From: Paragordius varius
Taxonomy: Eukaryota > Animalia > Nematomorpha
Assembly: GCA_964247055.1 (NCBI GenBank)
Contig: OZ176053.1
Span: 1,116,001 to 1,180,000 of the forward strand
Direction of reading: 5' to 3'
Length of the DNA: 64,000 nucleotides
The translations under genes and the position numbers were made by a program. How positions within the stretch are numbered: position 1 is the stretch's first letter; every line of letters begins with the position of its first letter. This document shows positions 2,018 through 49,053 of the stretch, in pieces. The notes below the pieces were generated by a model. That model was not told where the DNA came from and searched no databases. It worked only from the letters and a program-made list of their open reading frames with translations.

Positions 2018-2724
2018 TCGATTCATCGAAATATAAAAAAAATTCATTTAAAAAACTTGACATTTCTTATTTTTTAAATAAACCTCATGGTAAAAAATTA
2101 ATCAACATGACATAGGTGCATAGTATAAAAATAATGACCACTTTTTCTGTATATTTATATTGGATGAGATTAAATAAACATTAGATTTAATTTTACTTTC
2201 AAAACTTAATTTAATTTTGATATCTTGTCATATTGATATTATAGGATTAAGGCATAAATTTTGATAAAAACCGTTCATTCAGTACTTCTTTTATAAATAT
2301 CAACTTAAACATGGTCTGGGGTCCCTAGATACTCGATTTGAATTGTTGGAAACAAATTAAAACAGTTTTTTATAAATAATTCAATGATGAACATTTACGT
2401 AAAGCGCCACATCCAAAAATACTAAAATTCAATACAAATATTATTTTTTAATATATTTTAGTGATATATTTTACGATAGAGAAAAAAATTATTTAGTTAA
2501 TGTGCGTTACTTTCAATATGGAGTAATTGGCACAAAAGTGGGATGAATTTACCCAAATGATTTGTAAGGTCCAAATCAAAATACCATCATAATCGTGATG
2601 GATGACACATTTTTTTATTTAAATTTTATTTGATCAATATTTTCTTACTCCCATCTTCGTCCACTGAGTAAATTAATATAGATCTGAAATTAATCTATTA
2701 TAAACATAATTTATGCGCCAATAT

Positions 2725-3008: not shown

Positions 3009-3454
3009 AGTTAGCTAGCTAGTTGATACCGTTCCATATTTTAAAAATGTTGAACTTTAACACATCAAAAGATTTAATTTAAATCGTATTATTAGTAGAT
3101 TAGAGGCAAAATGTTGAAATGTATTAACGGGCCAAATATTTATATGTTTTTTGTGTCTTTAATTAGTTACAATGAAATTTTTGATATTTTTTATTTTTAA
3201 TCGGTAGTTTTCACTAGGCAAAGTTACTCGACTACTAAGACAAATTATGGAAGATTGTGACACAAAAATGTCTCTTAAATATAAATATCTTTAATATGCC
3301 TAATTTCAAAAATCTTACAAATTAATAAATTTAATCCGTTTTTGATTCTACGAAACTGGTTTCAGTTTGTTACACTCAATCAAGCAATATAATGATAAAT
3401 CATTTATTTAATAGCCGTTTAATCAATGAAAACAGATTTTTTATTATTTCATTT

Positions 3455-4151
3455 TCAATTCCTTCTTGGTGAAACCACAGTAGGGATGAATAATCGATCC
3501 CTGGTATACTATACGAAATATAAAATACATTATAAAAATATCGATTTAAAGAGCATTAATATATTATTCAAAATAACGAAAAATCTTTTATAAAGAAAAT
3601 ATTTACAAAAACCTACCGTTACAGTTATGGGGCCAGCATAGCCAGGGGCCACTCTATATTCAATAGCTTGGTCAGTCATAGTGACGGGCGAGCCACCAGA
3701 ACTTGGAATTTCAGTCGAGATACGATCTGTGCGTGTGTTTGTGCTTATTTCATTAATCACTAATATTATTAAACATTTATTTTATTAAATATAATGCGAC
3801 ATTCATATAGGTATTATTTTTAATTTTTTGAAAAAACTCTTGTTTACCGTTAAATCGAGATGGAATGTTGAATTTTATTGTCATATCCGCACACTCCGTG
3901 AAAACATGTCTCTTCAATCTATCTGATATTAAAGTGATGGATCTGTCTGGTCGAATTTTCCGATTGTTAAATTTGCATGCCATCGACAAACCTTCATATT
4001 CGTAAAAGAAAAGTAAATTTAAAGAATAAAAAATATAGTATGCCAATATATATGTAATACTGGTTAAGTATAAATATATTATAGTTATAATGGTTTTACT
4101 TGCAAATATGGCGATGCAAAGCGTTAAGATAATATGGATTTGTTTGTACAT
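3455..4151 (-). CDS. Secreted 130-aa protein, copy A (tentatively CUB-like); exons 4151-4100, 3991-3848, 3759-3617, 3508-3455
   Basis: Phase-compatible GT-AG introns give MYKQIHIILTLCIAIFASLSMACKFNNRKIRPDRSITLISDRLKRHVFTECADMTIKFNIPSRFNVINEISTNTRTDRISTEIPSSGGSPVTMTDQAIEYRVAPGYAGPITVTYTRDRLFIPTVVSPRRN*. The N-terminus is a hydrophobic signal peptide. Exon lengths and splice sites match copy B exactly. Confidence 0.85.
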
Positions 4152-4245
4152 TGTAGACAGGGTTAGTAGTTTTAGGAATTCGGTTGTGTTTATTTCACAG
4201 AAAAGGCGATAAAAAATGCTTATGAATTTCGTGGAAAAACCCGCT

Positions 4246-4253
4246 CTTTTATA
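4246..4253 (-). promoter_or_regulatory. Candidate TATA box of copy A
   Basis: TATAAAAG ~95 nt upstream of the ATG; conserved at the same relative position in copy B (6922-6929). Confidence 0.5.
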
Positions 4254-6145
4254 GCCTTCATATAAGGACCGGATATAAACCGGTTTGATTGATTTGTTTT
4301 TGGTAAGCTTAACCTCTTGTCATTGTTTATTTAACCGAATGGCGTCAATTACTCAAAACAACCAAAGTAAATAAACAAGTAAAATTCATAGTTAAAATAA
4401 TGAGCCCCAACTATGCTACCCATAAAAAATCAAGGTATAATAGTTTGTTTAATATGTATTATTGGCTAGAATGTCGTAAATATTTGATCTTTAACGGATA
4501 AAACAAATATATTTTGAAATTCACCCAAATTTTAAAAAGCGTTTAATTTTTTATTTTAATCTCTGCATAAAACTTCGAAAAAACCTATCAAAGATTAATT
4601 TTCAATTCCTTTAATTTTTTAGTGAATCGCGTATGAAAATTTTTAAATTATAATTATATTATCTATATTCAATTCTTTTTATCAATCATGCAGTGGTCAT
4701 TTATATGGGCGCAAAAAAATGAGCCAACTTTAATATAAATTCTATTCAAATAATAAATGAAAAAATAGCTCGATAAAATATTAGCTGCTTGTTAATGTGT
4801 AACCACAAATAGACTTAAAATTATAGCTAGTAGTTTAACTATAACACAATTTCGTTTTCGAAATCAATTAATATTAATTGTTTTATGAATCGTTTTATAA
4901 TTATATTTGATATGCGCCTGGAAATCTTTGTAAATTATAAAGGCTATTTGTAATTCTTCAAATACCATATATTATCATCTTTGCCGTTTAAAAATTTTAA
5001 CTCCCAATTTTTGTTTTAATCAAAAACGATAATTAATATTTTGTCATGATTCTTTCCTAAGCAAACATTAATATTTGGTATGCAACTCGGTGCGTGCTAA
5101 GTTTAATGTTCCCTAAATCACACATTCGATACATTCATAACGCTTAATTTATTTCACATGGTTATGAAAGATCAAGAATGCTCTAACTTTATTTCTAGTC
5201 GTTGGAATTTAAAATTGCAACCTTTTAAAGATATCGATGAGATGGTATTTAAAAAAACTAAAAATGCCTGTTTGAATGACATAAACGCAATAAATAAGCG
5301 GTTTTAAGAAAAACTTTTTGTGTTATTTTTAGACACTCCGGCCATCCTTACAAAGTTTGGGCTATTTTGATCCATTGGTTTTAAAAATATATTTATTGAC
5401 AAGAATGCTCTCGCTTCGCGGGTTTGTCGTTTCTATCTCCAATAAGAGCTATCGATGTAAATATATTAGTATGCATTTATTAGAGTTTTTATTACTCTTT
5501 CGAAAATTACAAATGGGCATTTGTTGTATATTTTCCAAAAAAAAATAATTTTTAGAAAAATTTTGATAAGGAGGGTGCATAATCGTAAAAAATCACATAA
5601 AATCCTAGTAAGTATCATAATTTTTAAGTCAGATTTACCGTTAAAATGATAGTAAACATTATAAAAGGCAAAAAACTCGAATGGTCGAGAGATTTGTTGT
5701 ATAGTGTAATATATAAATTCGGTTTAATTCCATAAAAATGTTTAAACACTTTATTAAATTTTTATTTTTTTGTACACAATGACATTTTTCGAGACATAAT
5801 TTTTTAAATAAACAACTGTTTTAGTTGTTTTAGTTAATTTTTAAATTATCATACATGTTAATTCATTAAATAGAGTATAAAATTGGGATAAGCTCCAAAA
5901 CACGACTGAAATAAACAGCTGATTTTGACATAAATGAACATCGAATGCTGGCTGGTAAAATGTAGCGTTAAAGCTTTCCAAGATTATTTTTATTTTCTAA
6001 GCATTATTTATTTGCTTGTATCTGAAATCATCTCATCCAAATATCAATGATAAAATATATAATAAATAATTTATTTTTAATTTATAATCAAAATATATAC
6101 ATGAGAATATATAGATTAATATAAACAGATTTTTCATTATATCAT

Positions 6146-6827
6146 TTAATTCCTTGTTGGCGAAACCACAGTAGGGATGAATAATCGATCCTGGGAATAC
6201 TATACGAAACATAAAATACATTATAAAAATATCGAAATTAAGTGAGTGCATTAATGTATTATTCAAAATAACGAAAAATCTATTTATAAAGAAAACTTTT
6301 ACAAAAACTTACCGCAACAGTAATTGGGCCAGTATAGCCAGGGGCCACTCTATATTCAATAGCTTGGGCACTCATAATGACTGGCGAGCCACCAGAACTT
6401 GGAATTTCTGTCGAGATGCGATCTGTGCGTGTATTTGTGCTTATTTGTCTTATTACTAAAGTATTATAAAGCAACATTTTAGTTAATGTAATGCGACATT
6501 CTATGGGTATTATTTTTGTTTTTTGAAAAAAATCTTATTTACCATTTAATTTAGGTTGAATGTTGAATTTTATTGTCATATCCGCACAATCCGTGAAAAC
6601 ATGTTTGTTCGATATTTCTGATCGTAGAATGATGGATCTGTCAACCCGAATATTTTGATTGTTAAATTTGCATGCCATTGACAAACCTTCATATTCATAA
6701 AAGAAAAATAAATTTATTGAATAAATAATATAGTATGCAATTATATTGGGTATATTATGGTTATAAATTATTTACTTGCAAATAAGGCAATGCAAAGCGT
6801 TAAGATAATATGGATTTGTTTGTACAT
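6146..6827 (-). CDS. Secreted 130-aa protein, copy B (tentatively CUB-like); exons 6827-6776, 6686-6543, 6455-6313, 6199-6146
   Basis: Spliced product MYKQIHIILTLCIALFASLSMACKFNNQNIRVDRSIILRSEISNKHVFTDCADMTIKFNIQPKLNVIRQISTNTRTDRISTEIPSSGGSPVIMSAQAIEYRVAPGYTGPITVAYSQDRLFIPTVVSPTRN*. Exons are 52/144/143/54 nt as in copy A, the stop is at the same codon (TAA vs TGA), and length differences fall only in introns. Confidence 0.85.
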
Positions 6828-6921: not shown

Positions 6922-6929
6922 CTTTTATA
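6922..6929 (-). promoter_or_regulatory. Candidate TATA box of copy B
   Basis: TATAAAAG conserved with copy A inside a duplicated ~300-bp upstream block. Confidence 0.5.
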
Positions 6930-8321
6930 GCATTTAAATAAGGACCGGATATTAACAGGTTTGATTTGCTTTTGGTGAGCTAAACCCTTTGTCATTGTTT
7001 AGTTGATTAAATTGCGTCAATTAGTGCAAATAAACCAAAGTAAATAAACAAGCGAATTTCATAGTAAAAATAATAAGCCCCAACTATGCTAAATTGTTGT
7101 AAATATTTGATTTTCATGAATACAACTAAATGTTTAACCTAAAAAACAAGTATGAATGACTTACCCATTATTTACTTACCTAACCTCTGATATTCATATT
7201 ATTATTATTGAGGAGAATTATTAGTTTAAATGGTTTTGAATTAAATTCAACACAATCGCTAATTTAATCCGTAAAAAAGTTCTTTGCTAAATATAATTTG
7301 ATTTTGTTGTGCACAAAACGAGTAAAATCGTCCATTGCTTTATATGTAGCATGGTAGTTATCATTAACACTTCATTACCTTTTAACTTTTTTGTCTTAAT
7401 TTACCTTTGGGAGTGTTTTATATCTCAAAGCGCAATTTTATATATACACTATGTTTTTTTTAAAAGTTATTTTAGTTCAAATATTGTCATCTAAAGTCAA
7501 TCGAATACCTCTATAGCACGATTGAGAAAAGCTGATATTATAATCAAAATATATCACGTTTTTACTGGTAAATTGTAGTCTGCAAGGATCTTAAAGTTAA
7601 TTATATTTTCTTTGCATTTGGGATTCAAAAAATTATAAAAAATTGGTTGCAAAAAAGTTAGAAGGGCGGATTTTGTTAGAATTTTATGTTTTTTTTAAAA
7701 AAAAATGTATAATGCGCCGCCAAAACGGCTAAAGAAAGCATATGTAAAGTTCGGCCTAATACTTTTTGAATTCAAATTATAAATCGCTCTGGGATATAAA
7801 ATACTACCCCAAAAAGTAATGGAGTGTTAATGGTATAAAAATATGGGGTAATTTAAACAGAAATATATTTAATGTAATAAAACTTAATTGAGTGCACACA
7901 TTTATATTCATTAATAAAGAATTTGATAACAAATTAAATTTTCATTGCTGCATTAAGAGTTTAATTTTATGATTATATATTTGCTTAACAACAATTGTAA
8001 AATGCTTTCCTAAACATATTTAAGTGCAAATAATGCACCTAAAATGCCATGGTATGCATATTTTTGATCCTGGTTAAATATTAGCGGCATTTTTATAGAT
8101 ATTTATAATTGAATAGATTTGAGTTCGACCTAATATCGAAATCAATATATTTTCAACTTTTGAGGAGCTAACTAGTTTAGGGAAAATGGAAAGCAAGTAA
8201 TGTAACTAGTAAGAAAAATTAAAAAATAACTATTAAATCGCAATTGAATATTAAATTTTTTATTACTAATAATTATAATTTTTGATCAGGCCATTCTTTT
8301 ATGAAATGCAAACGTTAAATA

Positions 8322-18966: not shown

Positions 18967-19643
18967 TTAAGATTCATAGCCTTCCTTCATTTTCATAATC
19001 ATTAGAGTGAGTATCAAATCCCAGGCATCTCGGGCCTCAGGTGTAAATTCTTCACCCATTTCGGTGGCCCAAACGCGCAGAATGCAATCTTTGAAACTAA
19101 TCCAATATGACATTTTGAAACCGGGAAATCTATTGTGCATTCGACCAAGAGCGACCATAATAGAGGCAACATTGTTGAGATCCTGCAAATTATCTACAAA
19201 CGATTTTATGCTAAATATGAATCGCTTTGAATGGGCCCGAAATAAATGATCCTTGATAAGGTCATCGTGAGATTTGTGCCCAAACGTGGGGAATATAGCT
19301 TTGATTTCGGGACGTCTTTTAAAAATAAGGAGAAACACTTCTATTCCAACCCTCTGTGGACTAATGATGACATGTCTCCATGTACTTTTGATTAATTTGC
19401 ATTCAAGCGGTGTAAGCGAAATAACTCCGCTATGTAAAGTATTTAATATATTTTGCTGGTGACTTGTAAACTGCTGTTTTCCATCATTTGGAATATTTTC
19501 TGACGAATTAATCAAAGAATTGAATTTGCTTTTTCTTCGTTCCGTTTGTAAGGCCTTCTCATCTGGATTTTTCAAACCCATATAAACCAACATGTTATTT
19601 ATCTTGGACAATGGTAATCCATAACTCCACGAAGGATTAGCTT
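18967..19643 (-). CDS. Globin (neuroglobin/globin-X-like), main exon containing the whole globin domain
   Basis: Canonical globin residues are present: A12 Trp (KSTW), B10 Phe (GIEVF), C2 Pro, CD1 Phe (AIF), distal E7 His (FRAHSKRF), proximal F8 His (LGRMH) and the H-helix AW. A phase-1 acceptor TTTAG|AA GCT lies at 19643 in the same open frame. Confidence 0.92.
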
Positions 19644-26628: not shown

Positions 26629-29600
26629 TGTAATAATAAATAAAGGAGAGCAAAGTATAAATTGGTTTTTAAATCAAGTTAAATAAAAAATTTTACACTC
26701 ATTCAGATAATCCGTTGGAAACTATACCATGACAATTAGATATGTTGCTCAAGCAATTAAAGAAGAAAAAGTTAAAATTTTGGGTAGATTTTAACAAATT
26801 TCAAGGGTGATATAATTTAAATTGGTAAGGCTTTTGAAAATGAGTAATTTATATAATATTTTATAAAAAAATTTGGTTTCAAAGATATAAATTTTTTGAC
26901 TAATGCATTGTACAGGATACATCCCACACTAAATAGGTGGACCAATTATTCATTTAGAAAATAAGTGAATAACCAATGAAAGACAATAGCGCGTTTTAAA
27001 GAAAATAATTTTTAATTAAAAATTAATCTTATATTATTTTTATAACGTTTTTCATAAAATGGAAATGAAATTATCCAATAGTTTTTGCAAAGCATGACTT
27101 TTCAAATTGCGCATTGCATTTTGTTTTGTCACGGTGCCTTATGAGATTATACCAGAAAAAATAATTATCAATTAATGACGTTATTTAAACATTGGTCCAA
27201 AGGCTAATATTTTAATTGATAAACAAAAGTAAGTATGTTCAACGATTGATTAAAACCTGAATCGGGAGATCCGAACCATATGAAATGGAGCATAAGGCAC
27301 ACGAATCGGCATTTTTCCATTCACCATTCTCTTTGAATAAAGTTGTGTGGCTATTTTTGTGCTTTTTCTCTTTAGCGCGAGCATTTTGGAACCAAACTTG
27401 GACAACGCGTTTGGAAAGGCCAATTTTCGAGCCTAAACGGTACACATAAAATTGACTAATGCTTCAAAGATTTTAAAAAATAATATTAAAAAACGATTTC
27501 ACATTAAAAATTTTATCGCAAAACAATTATTACCCAATAATTCGCATTCAATCATGGTCGGGGCTTTGTAGTCATTGAAAATGTACTTCATACATGCGAC
27601 CTGCGAATTATTCATTTGAGTTCGGTAACGTTTGTTGGCCGTTAAACAGCTTATATCGCCACCATGGGTTTCAGCTATCGCGGACAGCGTTGATAAAACA
27701 AATTTGTTTTCCGGTGTTGAAAACGTGGTTCCTGGCATATCGGTGGTTTTTCTTTTTAAACTTTCGTCTCTCTCATTGCTATGTATATTATTATTGAGGA
27801 GGTTACTTTTATATTTCATGTAGCCATTCAAGGGGCCTTGGTTATATATGGTTTGGTGATCATTTGATTCGAAAGCTTCATTTGAAACATCTGAGTATTG
27901 AGAATGAGGTATTGAGTTGCAAGGTGAATCCATCCCATTACTATTTTTCAGGTTCTGTGTGATTAACTGTTTAAGCAAATGGTTACTATTATTATTAACA
28001 TCATTTTTTGCCAATTTTGAGTTTGAAGGAGATTTTTGTATGTTTAAAGGATTAGGTATGATTTTTGGAAAAGAAACACCTTTTTTATTATGAGTTTTGG
28101 TTAAGTCTAAGGGAAACAAGCCTGTATAGTTAAATGTGTAGTTGGTATCTGTGAATTGATTTAATTTATCATTTGCTTCTCCAAAGTTATCGGTATTATT
28201 TGTTTGGTGATCGACATGTAAAGATGATTTTGTAGACTTTTTCTTGGTTGAATTGTGTGATTTGCGTTCATTGCTGGCTTCCTCGGGATTAGATGTGGAG
28301 GGTGGAAGTATTTTCAAGAATTCTTCATAACTCTCTTCATGCTTTATTTTTACGTGCAAATCTAACAATGATCGCGCCCGAAAAAACATATTGCAAAAAG
28401 GACAACGTTTTGGAGACTTGGGAGGCCCGAGGCCCAAACAATTGCTTGATCCTCGCTTGTTTCCCAATTTAGTTTTTGCGGGTATGGAATTTATGCTACT
28501 GAGATTGGAATTACTTTGGGTATTATGCGAACTTAAATTATTATTTTCGGTGTTACAGTTTAACAAATTGATATTGTTGAAAGAAGATTGGGTAGAATTA
28601 TTTTCATCATTAGCGTTGCCAGTGTAATTGCTGGCATTATGGTGGAAATCAAAACAATTTTTAACCTGATTATAATAATTGAAGCACACGGTCGATTTTT
28701 TGTCACGGGCCCGGGCATTCTGAAACCAAACCTGGACGACCCTTTTCTTGAGTCCAATGTCGCGTGCAATTTTTTCCATAACTATTTTGGAGGGGTTGCT
28801 TTCCGTTTGATAATGTCTGTGTAGGTACAATAACTGCTCCGGTGATATGTTTGTCCTCAACCTTTTTTTGGTGGTACTAGCAGTAGCCAATTCCCCATTT
28901 TCGATCCCATTATTATTGTCAACATCGTCCAACGTATCTCTGTGAGGTGTCATACCAAGTAGCGTTGTGGTTGAAATGCGTTCTTCATCCATCATGCACT
29001 TACTTTTGTTATCTACTGGATGGCACATTTGAGTGGATTCACTTTTGGGTGTATCCGATCTTGGCGACAAGTCGTTTCCATTCATCCCATCATTTTTAGC
29101 GTTAAAATTTGGTGACAATTTCGGAGTACACATATTTTGTAAAGCATAAGCATTAACAAAGTTTTCATTGAATGCCAATGGGTTATTGTTGTGAGTGTAA
29201 TTGTTGTGATCTATTAGTGTAGGTAGTTTATTTCCCGCAGAAAAGGGAGAATATAGATTTTCTTTTATCAACTCCTCCACGGCTCCTGCATTTCGTTGGG
29301 CAAGACTCGATTGTAACAATAATTGGTGCATTAACATAATGTTACGTTCGATAGCGGATAAATTTTTATTACTATGTTCAATATCATTATTACTGCTTTG
29401 CATTGGAAAATTATTGGCAAATATAGATTCTGGTGTGAAAGGAAAATAAGTTCCAGGATTTTGCTTCTGAAAATAGCCTTTCATAACCGCAAGATAATCA
29501 TTCCAATATTTTTTTCGTTGTTGTTCTACAAACGATAATGGGTCGGGGACATTAACAGAATTTTTTTCAACAGTCGGTGATGAGTCTGATACGGTACTGT

Positions 29601-32600
29601 CAGAATTAGTAGAAGATGAAAGTGAATGTTGTATTACATGTTGAGGCTCATCATTAAGGCTATTTATGGCGGAATTTGTAAAATTTCTACTTGCTTTAGT
29701 TGTATCATTATTAAGTTTAGAATCATACTTCTTAAACCTAGGCGATATATTATTGCTATCCTCACTTGGATTAGCGGTTGTACGACAATGGTTCGAATAT
29801 TGAGTTATAAAAGAATTTTTATGATCATATTGGCGATCTGAGGTTGAAGCGATAATAGATTTGTTTGTTTCATTAGAAACACCCAATTGTTTATTGGTTT
29901 GACCACCCTTAAAATATCTGGAATAGTAGGTCTCATAATACTTGTTAATGACATCGTTATCAGGGTGGGACACAGTGTGACAACCATTGGGAGCTTTGAT
30001 GACTGAAGCATGGGGAGAAGTGTCAAATTGTCTATCAGAATTTTTCTTTTTTTCCATCAAATTATTTTCTTCAAATTGAATATTTTTGGAGAAATCGTTT
30101 GCCATATTGCAATTCCTATTAGTATCTTTTTCATTGATGACGAGAGTTGGGGTAAAGTCATCTCGAGAACTAGCTCTCTCACAGTTATTGCTGTAAGAAC
30201 TACTTTGTGGTGACTGATGTTTCCTTTCGAGGTTTGACTGATGATTGGTTGATAAAAATTCCTGATTTATTTGGGATGACTGTTCATTATCTTTATCATT
30301 GGGCGATAACTCCGAAGAAGACTTTGCGAGCGTTAACAAATGTGCTGGATAGGACTCATAATGCTTACGAGCCTTCTGACGGGCATTCTGAAACCAAACG
30401 ACAATTACACGCGGACTCAGCCCAAGAATTTGTGAAATGGAGTCCAACTCATCATCTTTGGGATAGGCGTTTTTATCAAAATATTCCTGGAGAACACGGA
30501 TCTGAGCATCATTGAAGCGGGTACGATTTGCACGGCGCTGTGCGGCATTATTTAGTAGCGTATTATTGTGGTATGAGTAACCCAGGGGAAATTGCGTTGT
30601 AGAGCTAATTTCATCTGGAGATGCGTTCAATGTATTACGCAACTCATCAGGCGAAGTACAATTTGTTTGTTGAATGTTCACATCATTACCCAACAGTATT
30701 GGTGAATTTTTATTGTAATTTATATTATTATTTTGAATGTTTTTAAAATAATTGGATAAATTGTAATTATAATCGTCATGGTGATTATCATACTGTGAGT
30801 TATGAGGGTTATGGGGCCCATTTTCAGTTGATTGAAAATTTTTATCCTTATTAGGAGTATCTGGTTGCGAATGGCCATTAAACAGAGCATTTTTGGATTC
30901 GTTATTATTATTATTATATGATTTTTTGTCAGTTTGATTCAAATCTTTGATAGATGCGGATGTAGAAACACAACTTTCCTCATTTGCTATAGAATGGTAT
31001 TCAATTTGATTTGAAGTGCCGTTTGGATTTTCTGTAAAATCAGAGGATTCTTGATTCCCTCCTCCAGCAGGATCCATATCATCATTATCGGTTTGGAAAT
31101 CATTTTCTGAATCTGGGTTCAGTTTTGTCAATGGCGGGTTATTGAAATTGTAGGGAGAATCTTTATTCCTTTGACGTTCTTTAAAGAGCGTATTCCTGAA
31201 CCAATGCTTGATAACTTTTTGTGGCAAACCAGATTTATCAGACATGTATCTAATTTGTTCTTCAGTCGGACTATTGTTTATATCGAAATGTGCACGAAGC
31301 ACTTTAAGTTGATCATCATTAATGCGGGTTCTGGCTCGCTTAACCCCGCCTACATTTGCGAAGGTTATATTATTAATATTTTCATGAGTTGTGTTGTTGG
31401 ACTCAATCAAGGAATATTTATTATTACATTGATCATTTTGTTGTTTATTATTATGTTTTCCCTGAGTTTTGGTAGGAATAAGCGATGGAAACCGGGAATC
31501 AGTGTCATTTGGGGATTCTTCTTGTCGCCTAAGAGACAAGTCTTCGTCTCCCATATTTTTTTCATCACTGACACCAGATTTTGATTGTTGAGACGTGGTA
31601 ATAGTACAGGATTCAATTAGCCGGCTATCTTCTGCATTTGGAGGTATTTGAAAAGGCCCCATACAACCATAATAATTATTTGTGACTTGTGCCATAAAAT
31701 GATGAATTTGTTCTTGAAAACTTACAGTATTAGGATAATATTGGGAAGCGGCCATAAGATAGTAAGGCGCTAAAGGGTGTTGTAACATTTGTGTCATATC
31801 AAATTGGGGATTTGCGCTATTATGATTAAGATTTTGAGTGAAAGCTGAGGAATTTATGTCGCCCAACTTACAATTATTATTAGGTCTCATATCATTTTGG
31901 TAGCCGTTTAAACCATTTTTTCCAGCCGCTAACTGTTTAAGCATGGTTGCTGCCATTAAATCGTTCTGGAGATGAATTGGTAAAGCATTATCTAACGTGG
32001 GCATTGCTTCTTTTTGTGAGTCCTGTTGGCCATTTGAAATTTGTAAGGGATCTTTAAATAGGGATTGAAAAACATCAGTTGAGTTGTGTTCTAAATGGGG
32101 TGACAAAAGGGTGCTCTCATCAGTTTGTCCGTTTTTGTGGGTTTTAGCTGAATTAAAAGCTGGTGTGCTTTTACCAAATTGATCCATGTTTTTAGTTTTA
32201 CTATTATCATTGTCGGTGACCGAGTCATTGACAGATATGGAAGAATCCAATGTAGAGGTCGAAACATTTTGTGACACACTTTCTATACATCTTTCCTCCC
32301 GTATTTTATAATTTTTGGATGGGTTATCATCTAAGGGTGCAATCGAAGATTTTAGGACACGGGAAGCATGTGGGCCGGTAGAGTTAATGTTTGCATCTTT
32401 TTCAAAAGCTTCGATCCAGGCATACATTGAGGAATACAATTCGCCAGGTTCAACTTTGTTGCAATTATCGTTCATCTCTATAATTAGAAATGATTTAACA
32501 GTTCTAATTTTGAAATGCAAATGGCTACGAAAAAAACATTATAAAATTGTTAAAATATGTAAATTTATATAGAATTACCGTTTGGGGATGAATCAAGTTT

Positions 32601-35600
32601 CCGTTTCAACGGGTTCGAATTAAGACATTTTGTTATGGCATTTTGCGTAACGATTTGCGAATCCGGACTACGCATTTGATTCAAATGGGTAGACTCTTTG
32701 TTGTGGTCATTTCCATAACCCACTTGAATCAATTCTCGGGCAATGTTGGCGAGCGCACTGTCAAATCTCGATGTAATGTGATTTTGTTTTGTTGTAATTG
32801 TCCCGCTTATATCGGCATTAGGCATCAACATAATAGGTTCCTGGACATTATTTTGTTGGACCTCTTCTGTTGTATTGATATTCTGTGTTTTAGCATTATG
32901 GGAAGAAAGAGTGCGTTTCAAACGATGTAAATGGGAAACGGAATTGAAATGAACCAACAAAATATTTTTTTGCGTAAATGATTCAAGACACAAGGGACAC
33001 TTGAAGGGTCTCTGTGGATCCCAAAACTTTTCAAGAGTCGAAAAACGAGGATTGGAAGGCATATTTGTTTGACAATTGCCATTATTACTAATATTAATAG
33101 TGGTAGTGTTTTGATTTAAGCTACCCAACATTCCAGACTGTTGTGCGCCCATATTCAATAATAAATTTGTTGGTGCGTTAGGGTTGAATGATGTCATATC
33201 CCTTAAATCGCTCCCTGTTTCCGGCTACATTCATAGATAAAAAAAAATATGGGATAGTCACATCTTATGAACCAAAAGAGATAATTTTAATGGTTTCCAA
33301 TAAATTACGTGCCTTCAACACAAAAGTAATGAAATGACAATAAAGCGGTTAACTTCCCTTATTTATGTCCTATAATACATAAAATTGGATGCGACGCACA
33401 AATTTTACAAAAGAAGATTTTTTGTGTATTTATTAATGCCCTTTTTCGGCTACTATTTCCTATGAAATGTTTTAAGAAAAAGCCAAAATCTCAATGTATT
33501 AATGAATAATTTCACATTATTTTGTAAAACTATTAGTTTCAATTTTATTTTAGGCATCCCAGATATTCAAATATATATATGGCTGTATATTATTTAAAAT
33601 TCATAATGACTTTTTTATTAGTTATTCTCTACCATCACACCATATATCATTAGGAAAAAAAACTATCCTTTATAGCTAAAGAGAATATTTAAATTTGTAA
33701 TTACCTAATTTATTATCCTTAGATGATATCCTTAGAAATACAATGCATAATGATTATTATAAGCCTTATTATGACTTTTGATATTTGTCGTGTGTTTTTT
33801 TTCGCACATAATTAAAAAATCTTAAAAAAGTTTTTTATACGTTGCAACTATATATGATTATTTTTATAGTTAAAGAGGTCCTTCCTAATTCTCCCGCACA
33901 CCAAGATGCAGACACCAAAGGAAAAATTAATATTACGACACACATTAATTTATAAAAACAAAATTTTTTTAATGCATAAATATTTCGACTTACTGTCATT
34001 ATTATTATTAGAACAGTAAGCGATCAAAGAAAGACAAAAAAATTACCCTTTTTGATGATTAAAGTTTAAGTTTAAGTGGAATAGCAAAAAAGTCAACTAT
34101 GTGTACTTTTGATTCATCCAAAAATTTTTCTGTTTTGTAATGAATTTAAAAGTAAAACTAAGTTCGTATATGATAATTATCTACCATAATAGCATTTGCG
34201 GTATTTTTTGTGGCTAAAATATTTTCTCGAGCGGTTGGGTGCATACGAAGCATATGAGTCTTCAGAATAGAAACTTTATTGAAAGTCATGGAACACAGTT
34301 TGCATTTAGCATAATTCCTATCAATTCCGATATCAATTGAAATGAATTAGTTAGGCGTAAAAAAATATTAGGTTGACCACAATCGATATTATTTTAAATT
34401 AGAAATGTGTATAACACTAAATGTTAAATACAGGCAAAACTATATGGGATAATTGTAGTGAAAATCTAATTAATCAAAATAATTTGTTTCTATAACGCAA
34501 AAAACTAATTTTATTCCCATTTTTCTAACATGATTTTAAAAGTAAAGTAAGTACCATTAGAATTGTTAATGAACGGAAAATATTTTGGAATTAAAAAGTA
34601 AAATAATCTAAAAATTGAATAAAATTTATATAATTTAAAGCTTACCGCATGCGATAGTTCTTTCGCTTTAGACCGAGTAATGAATTATTGTCACTCAAAG
34701 TTTGGGAAGATATCGTTGAAACCTGATTAGAATCTCCATTTATCTGCAAAATTTTGTATATTTACAATTTTTAAAGTACTCCAATGTTTTTATATAAATA
34801 ATTCTCATATTCATCAAACTTTTAATAAAAAAATAGGTTATTTTGTAAAATAGCTGGCTCAATTGGTACAAGATTTAAGAAATATTTTGACAAAAAAACA
34901 GGTTTTAAAACAATGGACCCCCTCTGTCGTAAGACAAAAATTATATAAGTATCAAAGTGTATTATCTTTTTTTTTCTTGAAATATATTTTTAAAAAATAA
35001 TTACGGGAATAAAAAAAACATTTTAGAATAGTTTGAATCTAAAAAATACCTGAGCGGATCCAATATTTTGAGCCCCGATTTTTATTTGAAAATCTCCTCC
35101 AGAATGTTTAAAAGATTCAGAATGCTCATTCTCAAATACAGAATTTTTCGTTTCTTTATTTTTCAAGTTATAATCATCATGACCGATATTATCCATATTT
35201 CTGGAATTTTCGTTTTCAGTTTTGTTGAATGTCAAGGACTTATTATCACGTAGATAATTTTTACCTTTTTCAAGTTCATCATTGTCAACTTTTTTGTCGT
35301 CAATTAAAGTGTGTTCTCCATTTGATAACAACAGATTGTTAATGGTATTCTTATTAATGTTAGCTTGTTGGTAATTATGGCTTAGGGCAGCGGATAATGG
35401 TCTTTTAACTACTACGTTATTCGTAGTTTCATTATTCGACTTTTTTTTCTTCAAATTTGGCATTAGGACGAGAAGTGATTTCGACATTTCTTTCGTAGTT
35501 GTTGTGAGGGCTAATTCCAGCATAGAAGTGGTGGAATCATCGCCAAGCGTTTCAGAAAAAGATTTTTTTGATCCAATGTGTTGTTTAGAGCAATTTGGCG

Positions 35601-44600: not shown

Positions 44601-47600
44601 AAATATGTTAATATTCCCATTTCCCAAAATATGAATGAAAGTGTGCACAAAAATGTTTTTAGTTTCTGAATTAATTATGATTTGATTTTTAATTTGTGCA
44701 ATATTCCATACCATACTAAGCCTTATCTTTTGACAAAAAATAAATATTAATCCAAGTATATGGAAACATGTCACTTTAACTCCCAAAATATATTTTAATT
44801 TATATTACGATTTTAAAACCTTCACTACAAACCATGCATTCATGTCCTGCGATAAAAAATGGGGTAATTACCGAATGAAAAATTGTAATAAAAATGGAAA
44901 AATTCATAATTAAAATAAAGGGATGTTACAACAATGTTATGGTTTGGAAATTATAACTAAAGTATCGTTAAACAAAATAGAGCATATAATCTAAAGATTT
45001 AAGGCGTGAAAAAGTTTGATTCGAAATGGATAAAAATTAAATATTATTTATATAGAAGCTTAATTTAAAAATAGATTTTGTTCAACGTTAGTTTGGGCTT
45101 GTTAACTACCCTAAAATTAAAAAAACATATATAATACCCATAGAACAATCTAAGGATTCCCGAGGCTCTACTGTTTCCAAAAGATCTCCAAAATGTTTTT
45201 CAAGATTATCGGTTTGAGTGAAACAAAGCAAGCATATAAAACTTGGGGATTTAGCTGTATGAGTAATTTTTAGTTTTTCAGTCAGCTTTGTGGTAGATAT
45301 GTTTGCGATTATTTTTTGTACAAATTTCATCAACAAATAATTTAAGTGATAACTTTGTGTACTTTCTGTGTCTTTAATCGTGTTTTGAGGGTATTGACCA
45401 TTCTAATTAAACGAGTAAATCAATATTTATTCACAACTAACGCTAAACAGTTTGAATTAGTTTGGTTTACGATATGATTTCCAAAAAAAGTTAAATAATA
45501 CCTTTTGCCCCTTAATATTAAAACATTTAAACATTTTATCCAATAATTATAACACACACTTAATGACATTCAAGGCAAGCTGAATGATCATGGCATACCT
45601 TTTAATAGCTAAAAATTATAATATTCCTTCATAAACTAATTTTTCCATTAAAAACTAAACTTTTACTTGTTTTATGAGTTGAGTATTTGTTGAATCTAGC
45701 TTAGCCACCATAGATTTAGTTGAATAACTAAATGAGTGATCTTTATTGCGCTTATCTTTTGCCATTAACTCGGTTTGTTCGGAATGAGAGGTTTGATTTG
45801 CAATCGATTTTGGCGAGCTTTTATCCTCGTCGTTGGGGGAAAGTGTGGTTTGACACGAAAGCGAAGACGTCGAAGAGCCTGAATATAATGGATCGCTTTC
45901 AGAATTGTTGGTTACAGGAGTTTTATTAATTTTATTGGTTGGAGTGATATTTAAACTATTATTTTTATCCAAATTGGTTGGATTACTAGCAACTTTGCTA
46001 TCACTTCCGCCATTAAGAAGATTGAGTTCGTGAACATTGTTGGCATGTTTGTCGCTTTGCATGTGAATACTCAAATTGCCTTTCGTCGTTGTGCTGTAAT
46101 TGCAAATTTGACATTTGTAGGGTTTGTAACCACAAACGTAATTCTCGCCCCGTGCTAATCGGGGATGCGCTTCGCCATTCAAACAAAACGTGCAAGTGGA
46201 CGCAGCCTTGGCATCAGAACCATTCAGCGGATGTTTTTCCTTCATATGGATTTCGAGTGTTTCCTTGTACTTGTAATGCCAATTGCATTTGGGACATTTA
46301 AGCGTTTTACAGGAGTTTCGGGAATGCATCATAGTCATGTGTCCTCCCAGCGATCGCGAGGACCCAAGAACTAAATCACATTTGGGACATTCAACTGAAC
46401 CATTGGCAGAAGCCAGATTGATAGAATCAATGCAAGTCTTTGAATTTGGTGTCACCTCAACATTTGAAGAATTAACGCAAGATTTGGGTGAGGCAGCCAT
46501 ACCAATATTCTTAGACAACTTACTGGATGAAAGTGTCAAATCTAAAGCGGAATGTTCGCTTTGTCCATTTTCTACTGAAGAAGATAAGGGCAAGCTTCGT
46601 GGTTTGCAATTTCGTTTGGTCAGCGTTTTCGATTTCTTTCCCACTTTAACCTTACGCATTTTCATATTGTTATTGATATTACCATTATATATGTGATTGA
46701 TTAAACATGACTTAGAATCATTTTGAATGGTTTCACTCATACTGTCCCTTTCATTATCTGATGCCGTAGAATTGAGCTCATTTGCCTCTTCGGTAGAGTC
46801 CGAGTTTTCTCGTTTAATTTCTGGCAAAAATATTTGGGTAGCAGAATCTGAATTCTGATTATGGTTGTAAGTTGAATGATCGGAGCCAATGAAAGAGGAT
46901 TGAAACCATGAATACATTTTGGACATGGCAAACGGATCTTGAAACAGTGTTTGAAAGTACGGATAATTAGCGGTTAAATATTTAATCAGTTCCATATGGG
47001 GATGTGACAGGTTTGAGGACATACAATTTGATTTAATACTTGTTTCTTTCAAAAACTCAGCCATATTTGCAGAGGTTGGAGTAAATCCGTTAAAATGTGC
47101 AAATTCATTATTAACTTTTTTTAAAGGGTTAGTATCGCTGAGATTTTTGAAACCGTCAGGTGTAATTTTATCAGCATCTATACTTTGTTCCATATTATTT
47201 GAAGAGTAAAAATTTTTATAATAATTATCATTATGGTTAATTGGTTCTTTAAGTTTTTTAATAACACTCCTTTTTAAAACACTGCTCGTAGTATTTACAT
47301 CATCATCATTATTATTAATTGTTTTGTTTATGCTGATGTCGGTGTCATTGTTTGGCCTACTGAGCTCTGATTTAATATCTAAACTTTGGCGAAACTCCTT
47401 TGTACTGCCATAATTGGTTTGCGACAACTCATCAAAATTAGGGCGGTTACCATGCGTATCGTAATTGAATTTATAAGATAAGCCTTTCTTCGCAAGAGGA
47501 GAGGTCTCATTACTTTTTTCGAATGAGGTTTCAGGAAATTCCACAATTTTTTTGGCAAACGTGGTAATTAACAGTGCCGAAAATGGTTTTAAGGTGTTAT

Positions 47601-49053
47601 CGCCCAAATCTGTTTTTTGTTGACGACCGTCAACGAAAAATATGAAAATTTGATCCGATACATTAGATATTGTGTCTAGCTCCTTTTTTATATCAGTCCA
47701 AATTCCGTGCAATATGGGATCAAAATCTGAATCGTATTTTGAATTACTTCCATTTATATTGAAATTTTTGACTTCTGGAGATTTGTGATTCAACAAATTG
47801 TTGTGGGGACGATAGAAGTTTTTTTGGTACAACAACGCTTCAACATTATTTTTGTCTGGTGAACATTTGTTTGTTGTATTGTTCTCACTTGTGTGATAAA
47901 TTTCATATAAACTATTATCATTATTACAACTAATATTAATTTTGTCAAAATGTAACTTTAAATGTTGGCTTAATTGGATTGGAATATCAGCATTAAACTT
48001 ATTATTAATTGTTGGATTAGGGGAGCAATGGACATCAAACAGTTGAAAACCGATTTTACAAAACGTACAATAAAAATAGAGCGAAATATTTTTCAATTTT
48101 TTTGGTTCAAAATGGTTGTCGCTTTTTGCGACATTTACACACTTTTTATTATCGTTTCGATTCCGTTGTAACACATTTTTTGTTTTAACATTCAGAAATT
48201 TATCCAAAATCAATTGAGAAGTATCTAAACTATATGACCGCAATACTGATTTTTGATATTCAATATTATTTGTTTCATATCGTATAATAATCTCATGGGC
48301 AATGTTAAAACATGCAAATATGTTGATTGGCTTGCATGTTTCCGTTTTTGGAAAAGTTTCAAATACTTCAGTCCCTGTAAGTGATAACTCTTCTGTGGAA
48401 TCAATGTTTAGTTTTGACCAATGACATGGAATCAATATACTTGATGGTGTTAAATGATTAGAGGTGGTTGTTGTTTGATTCAAAATATCTGACCAATCTA
48501 GTTGTTTTACAAAATGGGATTGTAGCTTTGGAATGAATAATAATAAGCTATCAGATAAGATTAATATGGAATGGTGCTGATGGGAATATGTTTCAATATC
48601 AACATGGGTTTCATCAGCGTTGTTGTTTTCTATCACAGAATCGAGTTTGGACTCCGCTAAGCCCAAAACGGTTAAATGTAAAGGTTTGTGTAAAATATTC
48701 ATTTCTATAGCTTCATTCATACCATTGTGTTGAGAATCAGTGTTTTCATTAATTGTTGTTTTGGGTAGTAAATTAAGTATTATCGCCGTAGTTTTTTCAG
48801 GTAGATGATGGCATAATTGTTTATCAGATATGATATTATGAGGGTCATTTAAATGTAATTTTTCGTATTTGGTTTTATCATTATTGTGACATTTGTCAAG
48901 CTTATTGCATGAATTAATTGTCGTAAAGTTAACCGCGTTTCGTTGATCACAACCAAATTTGTCGTTCAAATCTGTCGGTTTATTGATAGAAATATATGGG
49001 ATAGTATTACAATTAAAACGGGGAACTAAAACATTTGAATTACATGATGACAT
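26302..49053 (-). CDS. zfh2: Zinc finger homeobox protein zfh2 / ZFHX3-4 orthologue, ~3,700 aa; exons 49053-45667, 45402-45138, 41438-41370, 39069-38566, 35654-35050, 34743-34646, 34317-34185, 33224-32579, 32477-27534, 27432-27257, 26574-26302
   Basis: Diagnostic motifs: [77 protein letters not shown] and [27 protein letters not shown]. Four homeodomains: [40 protein letters not shown] and [11 protein letters not shown] (the last split by a phase-1 intron). All junctions are GT-AG and frame-compatible (11,100 nt in total). Small extra exons could have been missed. Confidence 0.95.

Follow-up and report, generated by a model that had tools for sequence, protein, structure and literature searches.

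Copies A and B belong to a tandemly amplified family of small, predicted secreted proteins in the nematomorph Paragordius varius

The stretch of DNA analysed here, hereafter the window, comprises 64,000 nucleotides (nt) of Paragordius varius (GenBank assembly GCA_964247055.1, contig OZ176053.1, positions 1,116,001 to 1,180,000 of the forward strand) and carries near its start two neighbouring minus-strand genes, which we call copy A and copy B (Table 1). The interval between positions 3455 and 6827 runs exactly from the stop codon of copy A to the ATG of copy B. Strand reading and a boundary script gave exons of 52, 144, 110 and 54 nt in both genes. All six introns are of the GT..AG type (108, 121 and 108 nt in copy A; 89, 120 and 113 nt in copy B) and have a G+C content of 16-25%, against 31-50% in the exons; exon 2 has a phase-1 intron on each side, and the stop codon occupies the identical position in both copies. 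A preliminary description of this DNA had reported two intact four-exon genes with equal exon lengths, splice sites, TATA boxes and stop position, all of which are present, the coding sequence (CDS) being open over 360 nt in each copy. The proteins, described there as 130 amino acids (aa) long with 26 differing residues, are in fact 119 aa long and differ at 24 of 119 residues (43 of 360 nt). A 124-aa open reading frame (ORF) at 3777-4151 on the minus strand corresponds to unspliced exon 1, intron 1 and exon 2 of copy A and occurs in this copy only, because its first intron, at 108 nt, is in frame and free of stops. No other intron can be read through, introns 2 and 3 containing stops, and if intron 1 were retained in a copy A transcript, the product would still have a long and hydrophobic extension at its N-terminus.

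Table 1. Positions of the exons and regulatory features of copies A and B in the window, and of the exons of a distant paralogue on the same contig (contig 4)
Feature	Position	Strand	Remarks
Copy A exon 1	4100-4151	-	ATG 4151-4149; most of the signal peptide; ends in phase 1, followed by donor GTAAAA
Copy A exon 2	3848-3991	-	End of signal peptide, predicted SMA|C cleavage site, Cys23-Cys51 loop, most variable residues
Copy A exon 3	3617-3726	-	Best-conserved block, DRISTEIPSSGGSPV...YRVAPGYAGPITVT
Copy A exon 4	3455-3508	-	Includes TGA stop 3455-3457
Copy A TATA box TATAAAAG	4246-4253	-	102 nt upstream of ATG
Copy A palindrome ACCGGTTTATATCCGGT	4268-4284	-	Overlaps AACCGGTT octamer at 4278-4285
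Copy A AATAAA poly(A) signal	3403-3408	-	Conserved downstream block; second AATAAA at 3440-3445
Copy B exon 1	6776-6827	-	ATG 6827-6825
Copy B exon 2	6543-6686	-	144 nt
Copy B exon 3	6313-6422	-	110 nt
Copy B exon 4	6146-6199	-	Includes TAA stop 6146-6148
Copy B TATA box TATAAAAG	6922-6929	-	About 100 nt upstream of ATG
Copy B degenerate palindrome ACCTGTTAATATCCGGT	6944-6960	-	First arm mutated, AACCGGTT octamer lost
Copy B AATAAA poly(A) signal	6070-6075	-	Conserved downstream block
Distant paralogue exons	L052:350-398, 1490-1636, 1723-1856, 2259-2300	+	L052:350-2300 is contig 4:4,181,230-4,183,180

The two genes had been described as a tandem pair; they are indeed neighbours, but far from standing alone they belong to a ten-gene array and a 13-gene family. 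We searched the whole 110.6-Mb assembly from which the window comes in six frames, with exons 2 and 3 as queries, and found 12 close copies, ten of them on contig 4 (the contig of the window) and two on contig 2, at 12.855 and 12.860 Mb. Eight close copies lie on the plus strand of contig 4 between 1,076,887 and 1,112,862, and together with copies A and B (minus strand, 1,119,455-1,122,827) they form a convergent tandem array of ten genes. When all 12 close copies were modelled, each had an open CDS of 360 nt, the same exon lengths and GT..AG introns, and each encoded a distinct protein, with identities of 66-99%. A thirteenth, distant member was found on the plus strand of contig 4 by means of an exon 2 profile (E = 1.8e-6); it encodes 123 aa, is 35-40% identical to the close copies, shares their intron phases, retains both cysteines and has a first intron of 1,091 nt. 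Reciprocal searches of the genome added no further members to these 13. The genome-wide search for family size that the preliminary description had proposed, carried out as six-frame exon searches and the exon 2 profile, thus gave 13 genes.

Self-comparison of the array showed tandem units of about 4.8-5.5 kb, with transposon-like repeats between them, and a young core of six copies that are 94-97% identical even across intergenic DNA; a second gene was looked for within the tandem unit and none was found. The family has been enlarged through tandem duplication of these units, and the near-identity of the young core would fit amplification for dosage. In the tree, the contig-2 pair is separate from the ten genes of contig 4, and copies A and B fall within four older contig-4 lineages whose branching order is not settled, so that the two are no simple sister pair. 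The array has a single large gap, of 10.3 kb between adjacent copies (contig 4:1,097,200-1,106,700, upstream of the window), and segments of about 525 bp, such as that at 1,104,057-1,104,580 on contig 4, are repeated between several of its units.

The coding sequence of these genes is under purifying selection, and the genes are real. We base this on selection, that is, on exons free of insertions and deletions, on exons and promoter conserved above introns 1 and 3, and on ratios of nonsynonymous to synonymous substitution (dN/dS) below 1. In the alignment of the 12 close copies, gap columns make up 2 of 360 exon positions versus 80 of 352 intron positions (Fisher p = 2.5e-24), both of the exon columns being artefacts of the alignment around the stop codon. 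Comparison of contig-4 with contig-2 copies gave identities of 75-85% for the exons, 54-56% for introns 1 and 3, 68-71% for intron 2 and about 30-55% for the distal flanks, while the last 210 nt or so before the ATG, comprising the promoter and the 5' untranslated region (5'UTR), are 77% identical, on a par with the exons. By the Nei-Gojobori method, dN/dS over the whole CDS was 0.47 for copy A versus copy B and 0.22-0.5 for the other pairs bar one; the highest value, 0.73, was that of copy A versus the contig-4 copy at 1,112,176, and the test of dN/dS between copy A and the contig-2 copies gave a Fisher p of 0.0075. Constraint is distributed unevenly: dN/dS is 0.6-0.9 over residues 23-65 but 0.1-0.4 over residues 66-119, and among the 12 close copies 16 of 29 sites vary in the cysteine loop versus 10 of 37 in exon 3. 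The identity of copy A exon 2 (85%) is slightly lower than that of its flanking introns (88-89%), which suggests that selection on this exon is relaxed or adaptive, though not demonstrably positive. In alignments A2 and A4, the first residue of most exon 2 peptides is Leu (TTG) displayed as M, which concerns column 1 only.

The predicted proteins begin with a putative signal peptide, as the preliminary description had proposed. By inspection, a lysine at position 3 is followed by a hydrophobic stretch from I5 to F16 and then by S20-M21-A22|C23, with small residues at -3 and -1; the classical features of a signal peptide (n, h and c regions, small residues at -3 and -1, no hydrophobic C-terminus) are recognizable. 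The distant paralogue has a signal peptide of other sequence but of the same type, MKILSLICIIGVAIISTFNVVMA|C, ending in V-M-A|C, and the retention of this type and of the M-A-C junction in a changed sequence is good comparative evidence for the predicted cleavage. The mature chain would have 97 aa, with a computed mass of 10.8-11.1 kDa and an isoelectric point (pI) of 9.1-10.2; it contains neither an N-glycosylation sequon nor a hydrophobic tail. Its only cysteines, C23 and C51, are a conserved pair across the family. One third of the mature chain is beta-branched or aromatic, 13% is Pro or Gly and 20% is strong helix formers, and a crude Chou-Fasman scan predicted 6-8 short beta segments without any long helix, so the chain is probably mostly beta and coil. 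The sequence features named in the preliminary description, Cys23, Cys51, D-R-I (66-68) and a G-x-I-x-V-x-Y motif (G-P-I-T-V-T-Y, 97-103), were all found, but the last of these is not terminal, as 16 residues follow it.

Upstream of the genes, the alignment of the 12 close copies contains several conserved blocks: TAATTGACGC...TAAACAATGA, the dyad ACCGGTTTATATCCGGT, the TATA box TATAAAAG, the start region with the 5'UTR and, past the stop codon, AATAAA. The TATA box is invariant in all 12 and lies about 15 nt downstream of the dyad, whose first arm is an exact AACCGGTT in 11 of the 12, copy B being the sole exception. Although the promoter of the distant paralogue differs strongly from these in other respects, it contains ACCGG-N6-CCGGT 129 nt upstream of the ATG. 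There are 27 sites of the form ACCGG-N6/7-CCGGT in the 110.6 Mb of the genome, and 12 of these lie 117-133 nt upstream of ATGs of the family; given some 15 unrelated sites in 110 Mb, the chance of one such site in the promoter of the distant paralogue is on the order of 1 in 10,000. The Grainyhead (Grh) consensus is AACCGGTT and the CP2 motif is CNRG-N5/6-CNRG (PMC5829564). In Drosophila and other animals, Grainyhead factors drive the expression of genes for the cuticle, the epidermal barrier and wound repair (PMC7471608). The genome encodes one gene with a Grh/CP2 domain, at 4,841,005-4,841,601 on contig 1. As a motif match, the Grainyhead/CP2-type element suggests transcription in the epithelium or hypodermis.

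The preliminary description did not recognise the family, and neither did our searches of Pfam, PDB sequences, protein libraries, contigs and papers. The external searches used single exons, 2 and 3, as separate queries; exon 2 was compared with the large protein library by word search alone, a 36-aa profile becomes significant against a library of that size only from about 60% identity upwards, and the collections hold few genomes from this part of the animal tree. With the exon peptides of all 13 copies, Pfam gave no family match; a match of one copy to HTH_Tnp_ISL3 (E = 0.15) was attributed to chance. A word search of 5.8 billion proteins with exons 2 and 3, in which proteins of 119 aa are within the length range, returned no candidates, proteins of this genome included, and no relative was accepted from a hidden Markov model (HMM) search of 1.84 billion representatives with exon 3. 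Its six matches were all multi-stretch, and the three that we inspected were tandem-repeat junk ORFs with a short motif of the CPGY/CPRY type. PDB sequences, searched with profiles both narrow and widened by the distant paralogue, gave chance matches only (E 0.3-1.1), and no match was confirmed in metagenome contigs (two scans), viral contigs or prokaryotic genome contigs. In the ESM Atlas there was no usable match for exon 2, and the best value for exon 3, 0.78 to Ig-like/cadherin-like clusters, is at the noise level stated for the tool. Four peptide motifs of the family did not occur in the full text of papers.

We favour the interpretation that copies A and B are functional genes in a taxon-restricted, co-regulated 13-gene family encoding small, basic, secreted proteins, exported from an epithelium under a Grainyhead-type element, and we regard this interpretation as having about an even chance of being correct. 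In such a scheme, transcription in epithelial or hypodermal cells would be directed by the Grainyhead/CP2-type palindrome just upstream of the TATA box, here recognized as a motif match, and a 22-residue signal peptide would be removed at S-M-A|C from a precursor of 119-123 aa, releasing a basic chain (pI 9-10) of about 11 kDa and 97 residues, probably mostly beta and coil. The N-terminal cysteine would then pair with the second conserved cysteine and close a loop of 29 residues. This loop and the next 14 residues appear to evolve fastest and the C-terminal half appears constrained, and the faster-evolving loop would be the likely interaction face. The motif further suggests a product that might be exported in large amounts and serve at the surface, in association with the cuticle or in barrier defence. 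A more far-reaching version, in which the family would represent a new extracellular fold or family of this ecdysozoan lineage, epidermal under Grainyhead control and placed at the surface, with the variable disulfide loop contacting host, mate or microbes, seems doubtful to us.

Several points weigh against the favoured interpretation. The signal peptide was called by inspection and not by a trained predictor, the secondary structure comes from a crude Chou-Fasman scan, and the splice junctions as well as the level and tissue of expression are deduced from sequence. The G+C content at third codon positions (GC3; 0.33-0.39) equals that of neighbouring genes and therefore provides no independent sign of very high expression. 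The genome-wide count of the palindrome, 27, does not exceed that of the reversed control, 25, and the two occurrences of AACCGGTT in the window versus 0.61 expected are not a significant enrichment; the Grainyhead assignment is therefore a hypothesis drawn from position and conservation. Moreover, copy B has lost the octamer while its coding sequence is intact and under constraint.

The preliminary description had suggested that the mature chain could be a free-standing CUB domain of minimal size, comparable to the spermadhesins and without the second disulfide. CUB domains are ten-stranded jelly-roll beta-sandwiches of about 110 residues with four conserved cysteines in C1-C2 and C3-C4 disulfides, and spermadhesins are secreted proteins of 110-133 aa with one CUB domain and two disulfides. 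The proposal draws some support from a secreted protein of about 100 residues with short beta-type segments, from a first pair of cysteines that lie 28 residues apart in the family and 26 apart in a CUB exon of the same genome, and from the phase-1 introns that bound exon 2, the CUB domains of this genome being likewise split near their middle. However, with a limit of E<=10, the Pfam CUB model (PF00431, curated cut-off 21.4 bits) had no match to exon 2 or exon 3 in any of the 13 copies, whereas a six-frame scan of the genome with the same model recovered 36 exon pieces at E<=10, none of them at the 13 family loci. Pieces that exceed the curated cut-off correspond to half-domains some 40-75 aa long, with scores of 21-69 bits, so exon-level detection of true CUB domains works in this genome. 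Comparison by hhalign of the exon 2 and exon 3 profiles of the family with the N- and C-terminal halves of these CUB domains gave probabilities of 0.1-0.4%; there is no equivalent of the C3-C4 cysteines in exons 3 and 4; the motifs of the CUB pieces of this genome (CGG, SPnYP, the C3-C4 pair and GF.a.Y) are absent from the family; and the chain has 97 aa instead of about 110. Membership of the CUB family is thus not supported at the sequence level, and a degenerate, spermadhesin-like CUB domain is an unlikely account of these proteins; a convergent or very remote beta-sandwich is conceivable.

A different possibility is that the family interacts with another organism, either in antimicrobial or immune defence or, should the animal be parasitic, as effectors directed at its host, with the cysteine loop as recognition surface. 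The proteins are small, basic and secreted by prediction, all 12 close copies encode distinct proteins, variation is concentrated in the cysteine loop, where dN/dS reaches its highest regional values, and exon 2 of copy A has diverged slightly beyond its flanking introns. On the other hand, dN/dS never rises above 1, and the near-identity of the six core copies is a better fit with dosage than with diversification; we consider such a role possible, though with a clearly minor share of the probability. That the copies might be non-functional, as decaying duplicates, transposon cargo or chance ORF fragments, could be argued from the transposon-like repeats between the array units and from the lack of transcripts or annotated proteins of the family in the searched collections. 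Against this, all 13 copies are intact with conserved splice sites, their exons are free of insertions and deletions, dN/dS is below 1, the promoter and poly(A) blocks are as well conserved as the exons, and the copies are clustered rather than dispersed. In order of plausibility, a host or microbe effector is possible, a cryptic CUB-like domain is unlikely, and non-functional copies are essentially excluded.

The remainder of the window, whose G+C content ranges from 20 to 36%, contains several other open frames. A frame at 18967-19611 on the minus strand has a globin domain (Pfam Globin, E = 9e-22) and is probably one exon of a globin gene. At 27499-33197, also on the minus strand, lies a Zfh-2-type gene with a 1,673-aa frame containing three homeodomains, whose best match is ZFH-2 of Caenorhabditis briggsae (314 bits), followed by arthropods, molluscs and Priapulus at about 235 bits, a ranking that points to an ecdysozoan of nematode-like affinity; an adjoining frame of 210 aa has weak, below-threshold matches to C2H2 fingers. 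This region has a raised G+C content (0.36) and a strong negative AT skew, both of which are shared by a 1,132-aa frame at 45655-49053 (minus strand) with C2H2 zinc fingers close to its C-terminus, although the two sequences are not similar. Each of the two large frames has an antisense ORF of exactly 137 aa, at 31171-31584 and 46283-46696.

Families of this sort are present in most animal genomes, and the one described here is new but of a familiar kind, an ordinary lineage-specific gene family that is by itself unsurprising. Taxon-restricted secreted families are nevertheless where animals, and parasites especially, tend to keep the biology of surface, defence and host contact that is particular to a lineage. 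This family is clean and well delimited, with 13 intact genes, a clear map of constraint and a candidate cis-regulatory element retained through an ancient duplication, and it could provide a convenient handle on what the epidermis of a poorly known and very AT-rich ecdysozoan exports. Annotation that is based on ORFs or designed in the style used for prokaryotes misses such genes, and no predicted protein of any copy is found in the collections that we searched.

Among known systems, the family is like CUB domains and spermadhesins in being a secreted module, by prediction, of about 100 residues, with an N-terminal cysteine whose presumed partner lies 26-28 residues further on, a beta-type pattern and phase-1 borders. 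It is unlike them in having a single cysteine pair, a shorter chain, no HMM or profile-profile similarity and none of the CUB motifs, these differences being at the level of sequence, and what it shares with the spermadhesins is the secreted single-domain architecture only. The promoters of the family are like those of Grainyhead/CP2 targets, such as Drosophila Ddc with its site TGAACCGGTCC, in having an AACCGGT(T/C) core near the core promoter. The dyad of the family, CCGG-N6/7-CCGG, of which this core forms one arm, resembles the CP2 motif, but its spacing in the 12 close copies is 7 nt, unlike the 5-6 nt of that motif, and the link to Grainyhead is one of motif match.

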